Shown one piece after another: positions 27,271 to 39,961 of a DNA stretch of 64,000 bases; the stretch's first letter is position 1; each line of letters begins with the position of its first letter. The stretch comes from Saccharolobus solfataricus P2 (GTDB taxonomy: Archaea; Thermoproteota; Thermoprotei_A; Sulfolobales; Sulfolobaceae). Under the pieces are notes generated by a model. It was not told where the DNA came from, did not search any database, and was given only the letters and a program-made list of their open reading frames with translations. Location of the stretch: assembly GCF_000007005.1 (NCBI RefSeq), contig NC_002754.1; one strand, written 5' to 3'. A program made the position numbers and the translations under genes.

Positions 27271-27543
27271 ATGGGTAATAAAGTTTTCACATTTGGTGAT
27301 ATCAGAATTAGGGAAGTTAAGGGAAAGTATTATGTTTACTTAATAGAGAAGGACTCAGAAGGTAAGAGAAGGGATAATTATGTAGGTCCTTTAGATGAAA
27401 TCGTTAAAGGGTATATGCGGGGGACGGGATTTGAACCCGTGCAGGCCTTCGCCAGCGGAGCCTCAGTCCGCCCCCTTTGCCCTAGCTCGGGCACCCCCGC
27501 ATATCAATACTTTATATTAACTAGGTATAAAGTTTTACCATAG
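27271..27543 (+). pseudogene. N-terminal fragment (intN) of an SSV-type integrase running into the tRNA att site
   Basis: FTFGDIRIREVKGKYYVYLIEKD...YVGPLDEIV resembles the SSV1 D-335-like N-terminus; homology ends where the antisense tRNA begins at 27416. Confidence 0.8.
27416..27500 (-). tRNA. tRNA-Leu(GAG)
   Basis: GCGGGGG acceptor stem, anticodon arm GCGGA-CTGAGGC-TCCGC, long variable arm, T-arm ACGGG-TTCAAAT-CCCGT, discriminator A; no intron. Confidence 0.95.
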
Positions 27544-28181: not shown

Positions 28182-29171
28182 TTGGTAGGCAATAAAGTAA
28201 AATCCTTTATGTTACCGATTATTTCGTATGCTGTTCCTACATTTGTGTTAGTTTATCCATCGTTCTTTGTAAGCTGGCTCAGTGAGTCTATGCATTTAGC
28301 GTATTGGGAGGTGTTCGCAATAGTTGCTTTACCATTTCTAGGCAGAATAATTGGCTCTTTCATATACCAAGTATTCAAAAATAGTGTAATTTCTTACTGC
28401 TTTCCATTTCTTGGCTTTTTGGTTATTCTTCAAAATTTTTTAGGAGCTTTAATTTTTGTGAGATTTCTAGTAGGGGTAATATTTGGTCTGTTAACGAGCT
28501 ATGCTGTTGAGAGTGCAGTTAAAAGTGGTAGAAATGTGTTAGTAGGTTTTACCACCGCAGGTTGGCCTATAGGTTGGGTAATTAGTTATGTTGCATATGT
28601 TTTACTTAAAAATTGGAATGTAATTAATATAAGTGGAATTTTGATAATGTTATTAGCGCTATTTGAATTAAATGGGAAGGAGTTTGGAGAGAGAAGTAAG
28701 ATTTCTGTATCCTTTCCTAGGCTTACCTCAATATTGATTTATGTATCAGCATTAACACCAGCTTTCATTTTGCAAGTCATGCCGAGCTTTTTGGAGGTGA
28801 TAAAACTTACTTGGTTAATCCTTCCATCCTATTTATTATCAATTCCAACTTATGTGCTTTTACCTATAATTAGCGAAAAGGTAGGAATTAGAAAGGTTTT
28901 GGTTATTAGTTCCATTATTGTAATACTTAGTTGCGTTATTACCTTTCTTCTATTACCCATGATGGTAATTGTTTTCACTAGTATCGGTCTTGGTATTTTA
29001 GGGATAACACCGAAATATCTTGCAATTAGAGGTGAAGATCCAAAGAGGATGGGTTTGGCCTTGAACATTGGTTCAGTAATGGGTCTTATATTACCAGTAG
29101 TGTATGGGCTAATGCCATTTTCATCAGAGTTTTTATTATCCATTTTAATGGTTTTAATGATATTAATATGA
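28182..29171 (+). CDS. MFS transporter
   Basis: 329 aa; multi-TM, GRIIG and ISEKVGIRK motif-A-like loops. Confidence 0.8.
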   Translation: MVGNKVKSFMLPIISYAVPTFVLVYPSFFVSWLSESMHLAYWEVFAIVALPFLGRIIGSFIYQVFKNSVISYCFPFLGFLVILQNFLGALIFVRFLVGVIFGLLTSYAVESAVKSGRNVLVGFTTAGWPIGWVISYVAYVLLKNWNVINISGILIMLLALFELNGKEFGERSKISVSFPRLTSILIYVSALTPAFILQVMPSFLEVIKLTWLILPSYLLSIPTYVLLPIISEKVGIRKVLVISSIIVILSCVITFLLLPMMVIVFTSIGLGILGITPKYLAIRGEDPKRMGLALNIGSVMGLILPVVYGLMPFSSEFLLSILMVLMILI

Positions 29172-29225
29172 AACGAGATCGGCAGATTTTTAAGGTACAA
29201 GATCTTAAAGACATAATGATTAGGG

Positions 29226-30336
29226 ATGAGTCTTTGACGAATATGCTTTAAATAAGCAGGAATTGAAGGCACTAATTAAGGAATTGAAGAAATGGAAAGC
29301 GCCAGCCACTGTACTTCTGTCTTTATATATACCACCCGGTAGGCCTATTCCCGACGTAGTTAATCTTCTTAGACAAGAGTACTCCATAGCTCAGAACATA
29401 AAGCTCAAGAGAACTAGAGATGCTGTACTTTCCGCAATAGGTGCAGCAATAGACAGGCTTAATAAGATACCGAAGATAGATGGTAATGGTTTGGTATTGT
29501 TTTGTGGCGAAAATTTTGATACTGAGGACTTTAAGTGTTTTATGTTTTCTCCACCTGATAAAGTTCCATTATTCTTTTATAGAACAGATAAGGAATTTCA
29601 TCTAGAATTTTTAGAGGATATGGTGGAGGATACTGCAGTATATGGCCTTATAATTGTGGAGAGGGATGAAGCTACTATAGGTTTGCTTAAGGGGGCTAGG
29701 ATAGAAATTTTGGAGGAGATTGAAGGTTTTGTACCAGGTAAACATATGATGGGAGGGCAGTCTCAGAGAAGAATCGATAGAATAATTGACGAGATGTATC
29801 ATAATTTCTTAAAGGAGGTTGGTGAGAAAGTGAATGCGTATTTTATGCCTTTTGTTCAGAATGGTAAGATGAAAGGTGTATTATTAGGAGGTCCAGGATA
29901 TGCTAAGGAGGATTTCTATAAAGAAGACTATGTTGACTATAGAATAAAGAATTTAATTTTACAACCTTTAATTGACGTTTCTGACCAAGGTGAGGTTGGG
30001 TTAAGGGAAATGATAATGAAGGCTGAGGATTTGTTAAAGAATCAGCAGTACATTGAGGTAGAGAAATTACTAGAGGAATTAAAGTATCATTTGGCTAAGG
30101 ATGATGGATTGATAATTTACGGGAAGGAACAGATTAAGAAAGCTATGGAAATAGGGGCTATAGAGGCTATAGTAATTCATGAGGACTCTACTGATAAAGA
30201 ATTGGAGAAATTAGCACAAGATGCAGAAAATTACGGTGTTAAAGTTTTTGTTGTTGGTGATGAAGTGCCAGAGGCTGAATGGGTTAAAAAAACATTTAAT
30301 GGTATAGTAGGTAAGTTAAGGTATAGGCTATATTAG
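29226..30336 (+). CDS. prf1: Peptide chain release factor aRF1. Track ORF starts at TTG 29263; the proposed true start is ATG 29226 with a +1 frame change at CTT-TGA.
   Basis: NIKL (NIKS-like) and GGQ motifs; in-frame codons upstream of the TTG (DEYALNKQE) extend helix 1 but have no in-frame start. Confidence 0.93.
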
Positions 30337-33474: not shown

Positions 33475-33503
33475 GAAATTTAAATTCAAGGTCTTTTTGG
33501 TGA

Positions 33504-34397
33504 ATTATTATTAGACTTGCAGTAATCCATGAATCTGAGAAGGTTACTAAGGCTTCTAAGCAACTTTTACTTGAGGTAAAAAGTAGAAATCATAGTGCGT
33601 ATTATATAAGAATTTCCAAACTAAATGCAGAAATAACCGAGCATGGCATAGAATTTACATATAGTGGAAGGAAGGTTGATATAGATGGAGGACTAATAAG
33701 GAACTTGGGCTTCATCTCTACTACTGAGCAGTTCATAAAGAGGTTCGATGTATTAAGGGAGCTAGAAAGAAATGGAGTAGTACTAATGAATAGGCCAGAT
33801 TCGATGTTGCTAGCCAGGGATAAGTTTGCAAGTTTAATGAGAATGAGAAGGGCAGGTATTCCAGTTCCAAACACTGCACTAGTAGAAGATCCCTTCGAAG
33901 TTATGAGATTAGCAGAAAGATGGGGCGAAGTTGTGATAAAACCTGTAGTGGGAAGTCTAGGTTTAGGATCCGTTAAGGTTTCAGATCCAGATATAGCGTT
34001 TAGAGTAGCTAAGGCTATTTTATCGGTAAATCAGCCAGTTTACGTTCAAAAATATGTAAAGAAACCAGATAGAGATATTAGAGTGATTGTAATTGGGGAT
34101 AAAGTTCTAGGAAGCATATATAGAATATCGAAGAGTGGATGGAAAACTAATATAGCCCAAGGCGCTACAGCACAAGTTTTAATTCCAGATGCAGAATTAG
34201 AAGAAATAAGCTTAAAGAGTGTTAGAGTCCTCGGTTTGGATTATGCTGGGATAGATATTATAGAAGATGTGGAGAACGGTGGTTATAAGATAATTGAAGT
34301 TAATGCAGCACCTTTGTGGGACGGATTTGAGGCAGCTACAAATATTAATCCAGCTAAATATATTGTCACGCATTTAATAGAAAAGATTAGGAGATGA
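33504..34397 (+). CDS. RimK/LysX-family ATP-grasp ligase; start uncertain
   Basis: ATP-grasp motifs ([22 protein letters not shown]). The frame is open from 33504, 67 codons upstream of the track TTG, with no ATG/GTG/TTG in that stretch. Confidence 0.88.
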
Positions 34398-38598: not shown

Positions 38599-39961
38599 TT
38601 GAAAAGAGCCGAATATGATGTTTTGATTATTGGTTTAGGAATAGCTGGCGCGTCACTTGCTTGGAAATTGTCCCAATCTAATCTCAAGGTCTTAGCAATA
38701 GACAGTAAACCTTGGAATAGATTTGGGGATAAACCTTGTGGAGATGCTATAAGTAAAGAACATTTTGATAACTTGGGGTATGCCTTATCCTCAAGGTAAA
38801 GAGTTAGAGGAAAAAGTAGAGGGTATAAGGCTATACAGCCCCGATATGAAAACTATTTGGACTGTAAAAGGAGAAGGTTTTGAAATTGATTCTCCTAGTT
38901 ACGTACAGAGATTAGCCAAGGAGGCTAGAGATAGGGGAGTTGAAATTTTGGATCTAACAACAGCAATGAAACCTATAGTAATAGGCAATAAGGTTGAAGG
39001 TGCAGTTTTATTTAACAGAAGAACTAACGAAACTATCGAGGCTAAGGCTAAAATTACCGTTGACGCCACTGGATATTCAACTAGTTTCAGAAATAAGTTG
39101 CCGTTTGAATTTCCGGTGACTGAAACATTAGATGACAAAGATGCAGATATCGCTTATAGAGAAGTACTAAATACTAAAGACGAAATTGAGGAATACCCAT
39201 ATTTAAGGATATTCATAACACAGAAAGCCTCACCAGGGGGATATTGGTGGTACTTCCCTAAGGGACCGAACAAGGTCAATGTTGGTCTAGGTATACAAGG
39301 AGGTATGGGTTATCCCAGTATTCATGAGTTTTACAATAAATATGTTGACTATTATGCTCCGGATATAGATAAGAATAGACTCTTAGTTAAAGGCGGGGCG
39401 TTAGTACCGACGAGAAGACCATTAGCGACTATCGTATGGGATGGTGTAGCAGTAATAGGTGACTCAGCATTTACAGTGAATCCAGTACATGGAGGAGGCA
39501 AAGGTTCTGCAATGATTTCAGCTTACTGTGTTGGTAAAGCTATACTTAATGCCTTTGAGGTTAATGATTTCTCGGCAAAAGGACTATGGGATGCTAACGA
39601 ATGTTATATAGAGAGATATGGTGCTAAGCAAGCTAGCCTTGACTTGTTTAGGAGATTTTTACAAAGGTTAAGCGACGATGAGATCAATTATGGAATGAAT
39701 AGAAAAGTCATAAGAGAGGAGGACTTATTAGAGGCGAGTGCAAATGGTGATCTCCAACTTTCCACAGCAGAAAAAGCGATGAGAGTTATAATGGCTCTAG
39801 GGAAACCATCACTACTTTTTAAGCTAAAGACTGTTGCTGAGTATATGAAGAAAGTTAAGGACGTTTACAAACACTTCCCAGCAGAACCTAAAGACTTAAT
39901 GAAGTGGAAACATAGCGTGGACTCGATAATTTTAGAATTTAATAAAGCTTTGGAAAAGTAG
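38599..39961 (+). pseudogene. Digeranylgeranylglycerophospholipid reductase (GGR) split by a 1-nt frameshift; real mutation or sequence error
   Basis: ORF1 has GLGIAG and KPCGDA ending ...HFDNLG; ORF2 resumes MPYPQGKEL; the junction TTGGGGTATG (G-run 38775-38778) has one G too many. Confidence 0.85.

Follow-up and report, generated by a model that had tools for sequence, protein, structure and literature searches.

A stop codon four codons into the archaeal aRF1 gene as the probable site of a programmed +1 frameshift in Sulfolobales and Desulfurococcaceae

The class-I release factor aRF1 of Saccharolobus solfataricus P2 is encoded on the + strand of a stretch of 64,000 nucleotides of contig NC_002754.1, herein called the window. 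In this organism, and in most Sulfolobales and Desulfurococcaceae, aRF1 synthesis is proposed to pass obligatorily through a programmed +1 frameshift at the fourth codon, a reading whose probability is put at roughly four in five. Judged from the sequence, it is strongly supported that the full protein can only be read when the ribosome slips by +1 at a stop codon four codons into the gene. A +1 shift of the type known from the bacterial release factor RF2 (prfB) had been suggested in the initial annotation of the window, and this suggestion gains support from conservation of the site (81 clear cases in 112 loci), from a coding signal in the +1 frame, and from the lack of alternative start codons.

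The site is composed of ATG at 29226-29228, AGT, CTT at 29232-29234, TGA at 29235-29237, and a C at 29238. The ATG is preceded by ...GATTAGGG, and TGA-C is followed by GAA TAT GCT TTA AAT AAG CAG GAA TTG AAG. In frame 0, these codons form a mini-open reading frame (mini-ORF) at 29226-29237 that reads Met-Ser-Leu-stop. The aRF1 frame is shifted by +1 relative to the ATG, its codons being TGA (29227) GTC TTT GAC GAA TAT GCT TTA AAT AAG CAG GAA TTG (29263). It is shut by the TGA at 29227 and offers no ATG, GTG, or TTG until the TTG at 29263, from which the mechanically called ORF of 357 residues extends to 30336. When the T of TGA is skipped, Met-Ser-Leu is joined to Asp-Glu-Tyr and onward, and a product of 369 residues results; herein, the codons 29226-29234 are continued by the aRF1 reading frame 29236-30336, which runs from GAC at 29236 to TAG at 30334-30336. 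The motif, the closed frame without starts, and the length of the joined product had been described beforehand and were all recovered from the window sequence, the last by translation. ATG 29226 is the real start codon of aRF1, and the TTG at 29263-29265 that annotation pipelines take as the start of a 357-residue protein is most likely just Leu13.

Two other ways of starting near this site were considered and set aside. A noncanonical start codon in the aRF1 frame finds no counterpart in the relatives, where the frame reads GTC, GCC, GTT, or CTA, then TTT, then GAC or AGC, and where no near-cognate start is conserved. A competing upstream ORF (uORF) from ATG 29216 does exist, as had been pointed out; its ATG is missing in most other Sulfolobaceae, it is not conserved beyond the closest relatives, and it probably lies at or before the transcript start.

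The proposed course of events is as follows. Translation would be initiated at AUG 29226, and Met-Ser-Leu would be read, whereupon peptidyl-tRNA-Leu(GAG) would occupy CUU in the P site, with UGA and then C next in the A site. Arrival of aRF1 would release a tripeptide, and nothing useful would be made. As long as the A site stays empty, the P-site tRNA could slip from CUU to UUU on the slippery tetranucleotide C-UU-U (29232-29235), so that CTT 29232-29234 re-pairs as TTT 29233-29235, GAC enters the A site, and the 369-residue aRF1 is made. The frame-0 stop with its following C (UGA-C, 29235-29238) would thus act as a sensor of the aRF1 level. As aRF1 itself reads this stop, its concentration would set the ratio of the two outcomes: low aRF1 would give more frameshifting and high aRF1 less, which amounts to a negative feedback. 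The slip in the P site is suggested by the nucleotide sequence, and the feedback by the likeness to prfB. The same likeness points to tRNA-Leu(GAG), the decoder of CUU, as the tRNA that would slip to UUU. On UUU, this tRNA keeps G-U, A-U, and G-U pairs, as in E. coli prfB. Its gene was located by ARAGORN at 27415-27501 on the - strand, 1.7 kb upstream of the aRF1 cassette, and is the sole tRNA gene in the 64-kb window.

The conservation of the site was determined in 112 aRF1 loci, namely the window and 111 loci fetched by protein similarity alone without consulting the motif; 32 loci derive from one-genome-per-species contigs and 80 from metagenomes. Thermoproteales, Euryarchaeota, Thaumarchaeota, and Asgard archaea were left out of this survey. 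A locus was counted as positive when a start codon, up to eight codons, N-TT, and a stop stood in frame one base behind aRF1, with the site 24-36 codons 5′ of the conserved LSLYIPP core and the aRF1 frame open onward. This rule was matched in 82 of the 112 loci including the window, of which 81 are clear and one (L086) is ambiguous; the clear cases represent 70 different 59-nt sequences. Since the same rule was matched in only 1.3% of shuffled upstream regions, at 0.4% of random anchors, and in 0/112 loci when the other wrong frame was used, the motif occurs far above chance.

The usual design consists of a start codon, two more codons up to N-TT, T-AG or T-GA in frame 0, and aRF1 in the +1 frame. 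Examples include TTAGGG ATG AGT CTT TGA C in Stygiolobus, CAGGG ATG AGT CTT TAG C in Ca. Acidianus copahuensis, GAGGG ATG GGT TTT TAG C in Staphylothermus, GGGT ATG GGC/GGT TTT TAG C in two complete chromosomes of Thermogladius, and AGGG ATG AGT CTT TAG C in Desulfurococcus. Other Thermoproteota show ATG CCT ATT TGA T or GTG AAT AAT ATT TAG C. The cassette of the window recurs in three complete S. islandicus genomes (CP001400, CP001404, and CP046616); Sulfodiicoccus acidiphilus carries ATG AGT CTT TGA G, and the cassette is also found in Metallosphaera yellowstonensis. Its retention in complete genomes of cultured strains argues that no sequencing error is involved. The check for conservation of ATG-NNN-CTT-TGA-C upstream of aRF1, which had been recommended for Sulfolobales, thus reveals a site that is conserved well past this order. 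The account of the site is to be corrected in one point: CUU, UUU, and AUU all serve as shift codon, and UAG prevails among the stops.

Among the 82 motif-positive loci, the P-site codon is TTT in 32, CTT in 26, and ATT in 22, and N-TT-T is kept in every one of them. A P-site codon that is able to re-pair in the +1 frame is therefore present throughout, and the window contains the gene of the matching tRNA-Leu(GAG). For UUU-U, the re-pairing would be perfect. The start codon is ATG in 70 loci, and the upstream ORF has three sense codons in 71. The stop codon is TAG in 63 loci, TGA in 18, and TAA in 1, and it is followed by C, a weak termination context, in 60 and by T in 19.

The stop is present in all 82 loci by definition of the rule. 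Independent evidence for selection on it comes from the first codon of the +1 frame. Wherever this codon encodes serine, it is AGC or AGT (61/61 cases), compared with 46% AGY elsewhere in the same genes. As serine is exclusively AGY at this position, the stop itself is under selection. Furthermore, AGC exceeds AGT by 48:13 at the site versus 240:281 elsewhere in the same genes, which indicates that C after the stop is preferred. TAA is nearly unused as shift stop (1/82 loci). The AGY serines, the preferred C, and the rarity of TAA fit a slowly read stop that drives the shift, whereas a model based on the T run alone predicts none of them.

From the stop up to the homologue of codon TTG 29263, the DNA is, on the evidence of its sequence, coding in the +1 frame. 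The peptide following the shift is conserved as (S/D)(K/E)Y.(L/I).(K/R).E in Sulfolobales and as SYSEE.(L/I)E.L(K/R)VD in Desulfurococcaceae. For the Desulfurococcaceae set, the entropy after the shift amounts to 0.67, 0.52, and 1.31 bits at codon positions 1, 2, and 3, respectively. Relatives without the shift carry a colinear N terminus in a single frame: the shift-free locus L108 reads ATG AGC ATA GAG GAA AAG (MSIEEK), and the frameshift-type locus L046 reads ATG AGT ATT TGA and then GAG GAG AAG (MSI-EEK). The site is hence conserved phylogenetically, with coding constraint on either side, as is generally looked for in a programmed frameshift.

In most relatives, the codon homologous to TTG 29263 is TTA, CTG, CTC, CTT, or CTA. 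Of the 82 motif-positive loci, 61 lack an in-frame start that lies far enough upstream to preserve the first helix of aRF1. Because 35 of the 82 lack any in-frame ATG, GTG, or TTG from the stop to the conserved core, the annotated TTG start cannot be general.

The gene belongs to the aRF1/eRF1 family of class-I release factors. Its closest database relative is the S. islandicus protein named peptide chain release factor aRF-1 (96% identity); the domains eRF1_1, eRF1_2, and eRF1_3 (Pfam PF03463, PF03464, and PF03465) are precomputed on the closest relatives, and GGQSQ is found in the ORF of the window. The protein matches the crystal structure of A. pernix aRF1 (3AGK) with E = 4.8e-133 over query residues 6-368. 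This alignment starts at query residue 6 and chain residue 10, within the stretch that would be lost under the TTG start. When the exact window translation from GAC 29236 was modelled with AlphaFold2 (mean pLDDT 83.8), the first helix came to lie at product residues K10-K21, so that a start at L13 would remove its first turn. The earlier statement that the residues NKQE extend the first helix is borne out to a modest degree by this model and by the extent of the 3AGK alignment.

Annotated relatives start at scattered points. Within one cluster of Sulfolobaceae proteins at 90% identity, the annotated lengths are 244, 322, 347, 350, 353, 357, and 363 residues, with starts at differing Leu or Met residues, and gene callers are evidently unable to agree on the start. 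The truncated 357-residue protein of the window is present on 138 contigs. In a collection of about 15 billion proteins, this truncated form is present, and none of six joined products tested was found. In a cryo-EM study, the aRF1 gene of S. acidocaldarius was cloned, and the deposited chain 8HKU contains 232 residues only (PMC10516650). Recombinant aRF1 that was built from annotated ORFs may be without its true N terminus.

A maximum-likelihood tree was calculated from 109 aRF1 sequences; it requires 2-3 trait changes for the cassette versus about 26 for shuffled labels and, being unrooted, does not distinguish gain from loss. The cassette is found in 23/23 rows of the Sulfolobales clade, in 34/35 rows of the Desulfurococcaceae clade (the exception being locus L077), and in two further clades. 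It is missing from the Pyrodictiaceae clade, the Acidilobaceae (Tiamatella) clade, and the Aeropyrum-like group. An ancient, obligatory +1 shift is likely to be the normal way of aRF1 synthesis in Sulfolobales, Desulfurococcaceae, and allied Thermoprotei, and it would constitute a release-factor-sensing loop independent of prfB.

Two loci were treated as ambiguous. L077 (metagenome Ga0065719_106579, Desulfurococcus-like) reads ATG GGT CTT TTA GCT about 100 nt upstream of the LSLYIPP codons and has one T more than its sister L069, whereby TAG comes to lie in the +1 frame; the additional T may be genuine or may stem from an assembly error in the homopolymer. L086 has ATG GGG GTT TAG T in frameshift geometry beside an in-frame GTG. 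L112, L083, L098, and L086 form one clade of metagenome loci in which aRF1 begins at an in-frame TTG. In L112, the TTG stands directly 3′ of GGG GTT TAG in the same frame and resembles a remnant of the cassette. This clade may be a lineage in transition between the shift and the shift-free state.

The surroundings of the site contain further signals. A predicted TATA-like box of the aRF1 promoter, ATTTTTAAGG, lies at 29186-29195 on the + strand, and every aligned Sulfolobaceae locus has a T/A-rich box at -39..-31 from the ATG. From the usual archaeal distance between TATA box and start site, the transcript is predicted to start near 29218, which would leave a 5′ leader of some 8 nt that opens with GAUUAGGG. 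A Metallosphaera-like clade has its box about 7 nt nearer, and the start site placed in the same way predicts a leaderless mRNA.

Directly 5′ of the ATG and 6 nt 5′ of the shift codon, the window carries the G-rich tract AGGG (29222-29225, + strand). The sequence AGGGATG (29222-29228) had been reported to lie 3 nt 5′ of CTT; this location is correct for the whole heptamer, and the G-rich tract itself is 6-7 nt away from the shift codon. Of the 70 unique cassettes, 65 have a G-rich triplet within -11..-6 of the shift codon, with a maximum G frequency of 95% at distance 9, and the tract is missing only in the Metallosphaera-like clade with the predicted leaderless mRNA. The spacing of tract and shift codon is preserved also in cassettes whose start codon precedes the tract, as in ATG GGG AGC ACT ATT TAG. 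In shift-free loci, the G tract is found 6-11 nt before the start codon. By this measure, the tract of the frameshift loci stands at about the normal Shine-Dalgarno (SD) distance from the shift codon and not from the start codon. It may be an SD-like stimulator that pairs with the 3′ end of the 16S rRNA. The window's own genes include too few reliable SD-led cases to define an optimal spacing. In 27 of 48 unique Desulfurococcaceae-type cassettes, a tetramer count revealed a further SD-like motif of the GGTG type 5′ of the ATG, which is only meaningful if translation really begins at this ATG.

With RNAalifold, ungapped alignments of the two main types of cassette gave no conserved RNA structure downstream of the site or flanking it when compared with column shuffles. 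The exception, a weak 6-bp hairpin in the Sulfolobaceae set (-1.4 kcal/mol), consisting of invariant bases with three G-U pairs, was dismissed in view of growth at about 80 °C. Rfam gave nothing relevant at 28900-29600.

The cassette resembles prfB in many respects. Both genes encode a class-I release factor, and in both the encoded factor itself reads the frame-0 stop that occupies the A site. Both have CUU followed by U, on which tRNA-Leu(GAG) can re-pair as UUU, a C after the stop, and a G-rich tract upstream. The full-length factor arises only after the shift, which gives the logic of a negative feedback. However, aRF1 is of the eRF1 family and no homologue of RF2, and its host is an archaeon. 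The shift would take place at codon 4 instead of codon 26, with a tripeptide as the failed product. All three stops are read by aRF1, and its sites accordingly use UAG, UGA, and once UAA; they also include UUU-U and AUU-U. The G tract lies 6-7 nt from the shift codon compared with 3 nt in prfB, and the variants predicted to be leaderless are without it. As aRF1 is unrelated to RF2, the cassette is a functional analogue of prfB and not a member of its family.

Stop-triggered +1 shifting is also known from eukaryotes. Antizyme is shifted at UCC-UGA-U, senses polyamines, and employs a downstream pseudoknot together with upstream elements; in Euplotes, shifting at AAA-UAA/UAG occurs genome-wide. 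The aRF1 site shares with them a +1 shift set off by a slowly decoded stop in the A site, and antizyme is likewise a feedback sensor, although of polyamines and not of a release factor. Among the eRF1/aRF1-family factors, the eRF1-like genes R726 of Mimivirus and mg280 of Megavirus need a frameshift at an internal stop, and autoregulation was proposed for them (Jeudy et al. 2012, PMC3521657). These viral genes differ in needing to be recoded twice, by a frameshift as well as by a readthrough, inside the gene. According to the same study, archaeal and eukaryotic homologues lack such regulation (PMC3521657), a statement that the aRF1 cassette contradicts for Thermoprotei.

For fucA1 of S. solfataricus, and thus in the genus of the window, a programmed -1 frameshift at A-AAA-AAT with a putative stem-loop was described (Cobucci-Ponzano 2006, PMC1616953). 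Apart from fucA1, according to a review of 2021, no ribosomal frameshift of a cellular archaeal gene has been demonstrated by experiment (PMC8211752). In contrast to the aRF1 cassette, which is +1 at a stop and kept across orders, the fucA1 shift is -1 and limited to two strains, with full-length homologues in other Sulfolobales. Neither a 2016 review on frameshifting nor the 2021 review on archaeal recoding contains an aRF1 case, and the text of the GeneTack survey mentions no archaeal release factor; an upstream ORF of three codons is probably too short for a detector of the GeneTack type. An earlier description of an aRF1 frameshift in archaea did not turn up in a full-text literature search, with paywalled papers out of reach.

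Several observations weigh against an obligatory shift with feedback. After re-pairing in the +1 frame, AUU-U would keep only two of three pairs. A slip with only a tripeptide on the tRNA is unusual, prfB shifting at codon 26. The G tract is further away from the shift codon than in prfB, one clade does without it, and a conserved downstream structure was not seen. The extra T of L077 would demand a -1/+2 shift, L086 could start at its in-frame GTG, and TTG 29263 in the window could yield some truncated protein. N-terminal peptide, ribosome-profiling, or reporter data were not found, nor was any ribosome-profiling study of Sulfolobus in the literature searched.

Of the alternatives, a real and obligatory shift without feedback is the least unlikely, though still improbable. 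Herein, the shift would run at a fixed ratio or sense temperature, polyamines, or the general translation load. A response to aRF1 is not readable from the sequence, it is polyamines that bring about the +1 shift of antizyme at its stop codon (cited in PMC8211752), and with only three sense codons, any factor of early elongation could act. Yet the A-site codon is always a stop that the gene's own product decodes, and the weaker stops TAG and TGA (81/82 loci) as well as the C (60/82) are what a termination-rate sensor would select. The logic of such a sensor is experimentally established for prfB. It is very unlikely that recoding is absent altogether, with the mini-ORF acting as a regulatory uORF and aRF1 starting at TTG 29263 or its equivalent, thus missing the first 12 residues. 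The TTG is in frame, every public annotation takes it or a later codon, and recombinant aRF1 was cloned from annotated ORFs (PMC10516650); this is countered by the 35 startless loci and the homologous codons that are no start codons in most relatives, by the skipped region that is conserved as +1 coding and colinear with single-frame orthologues, and by annotated N termini that are inconsistent (244-363 residues) and, at L13, cut the first helix.

Just as little likelihood is assigned to a correction at the RNA level, either by polymerase slippage on the T run or by editing that removes one U. Transcriptional slippage usually needs runs of seven or more. Every site contains 3-5 T in a row, and slippage is known to correct frames in prokaryotes (PMC5009743), but runs of three T are far below the usual length. 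Moreover, the length of the T run varies while the stop codon is invariant, and as a correction of the RNA needs no stop, the AGY-only serine and the missing of non-stop triplets after TTT would be left unexplained. A sequencing or assembly error, or a strain-specific mutation in one genome, has next to no probability and is already refuted by the comparative data: although the window does contain one true single-base indel, at 38779 in a gene for geranylgeranyl reductase (GGR) and absent from S. islandicus, the aRF1 cassette recurs in 81 loci, whose sources are isolates, complete chromosomes, and many metagenomes, and the truncated window protein is spread over the 138 contigs mentioned previously. 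The obligatory +1 shift with feedback on the aRF1 level is thus the preferred reading.

The two other one-base anomalies of the window, which had been listed as a caveat, do not weaken the case. At 38775-38782, the GGR gene is split into 38599-38799 and 38765-39961 by one extra T at 38779 (CTTGGGGTATGCC versus CTTGGGGATGCC in S. islandicus, where the gene is intact with 453 residues). The split is a strain-specific frameshift or a sequencing error and is not conserved, in contrast to the aRF1 site. At 33499-33515 (around 33500), a RimK/LysX-like ATP-grasp gene, mechanically called as an ORF from TTG 33705, has a conserved N-terminal extension without ATG, GTG, or TTG. The sequence GGTGA ATT ATT ATT AGA CTT GCA is the same in S. 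islandicus, whose annotation gives the gene a noncanonical start and 290 residues. In the simplest reading, translation would begin at an AUU that follows a perfect GGUGA SD sequence at a distance of 6 nt. Read as GTG AAT TAT TAT TAG A, this site would also permit a +1 shift at a stop, with poor re-pairing.

If the proposal is true, aRF1 would be the first cellular archaeal gene with a programmed +1 frameshift. The aRF1 N termini of these lineages would be misannotated in all public databases searched, and structural and biochemical work on the annotated ORF would have been carried out with a factor truncated at its N terminus. Detectors that require two sizeable ORFs are blind to an upstream ORF of three codons, and other cases may be hidden. 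With a cassette of about 16 nt and some variants that are predicted to be leaderless, the system offers a small natural model for archaeal frameshifting and termination kinetics at high temperature. Autoregulation of RF2 is the textbook case of a regulatory frameshift; its convergent counterpart in the unrelated aRF1, across at least two archaeal orders, would mean that self-sensing by a slippery stop evolves repeatedly.

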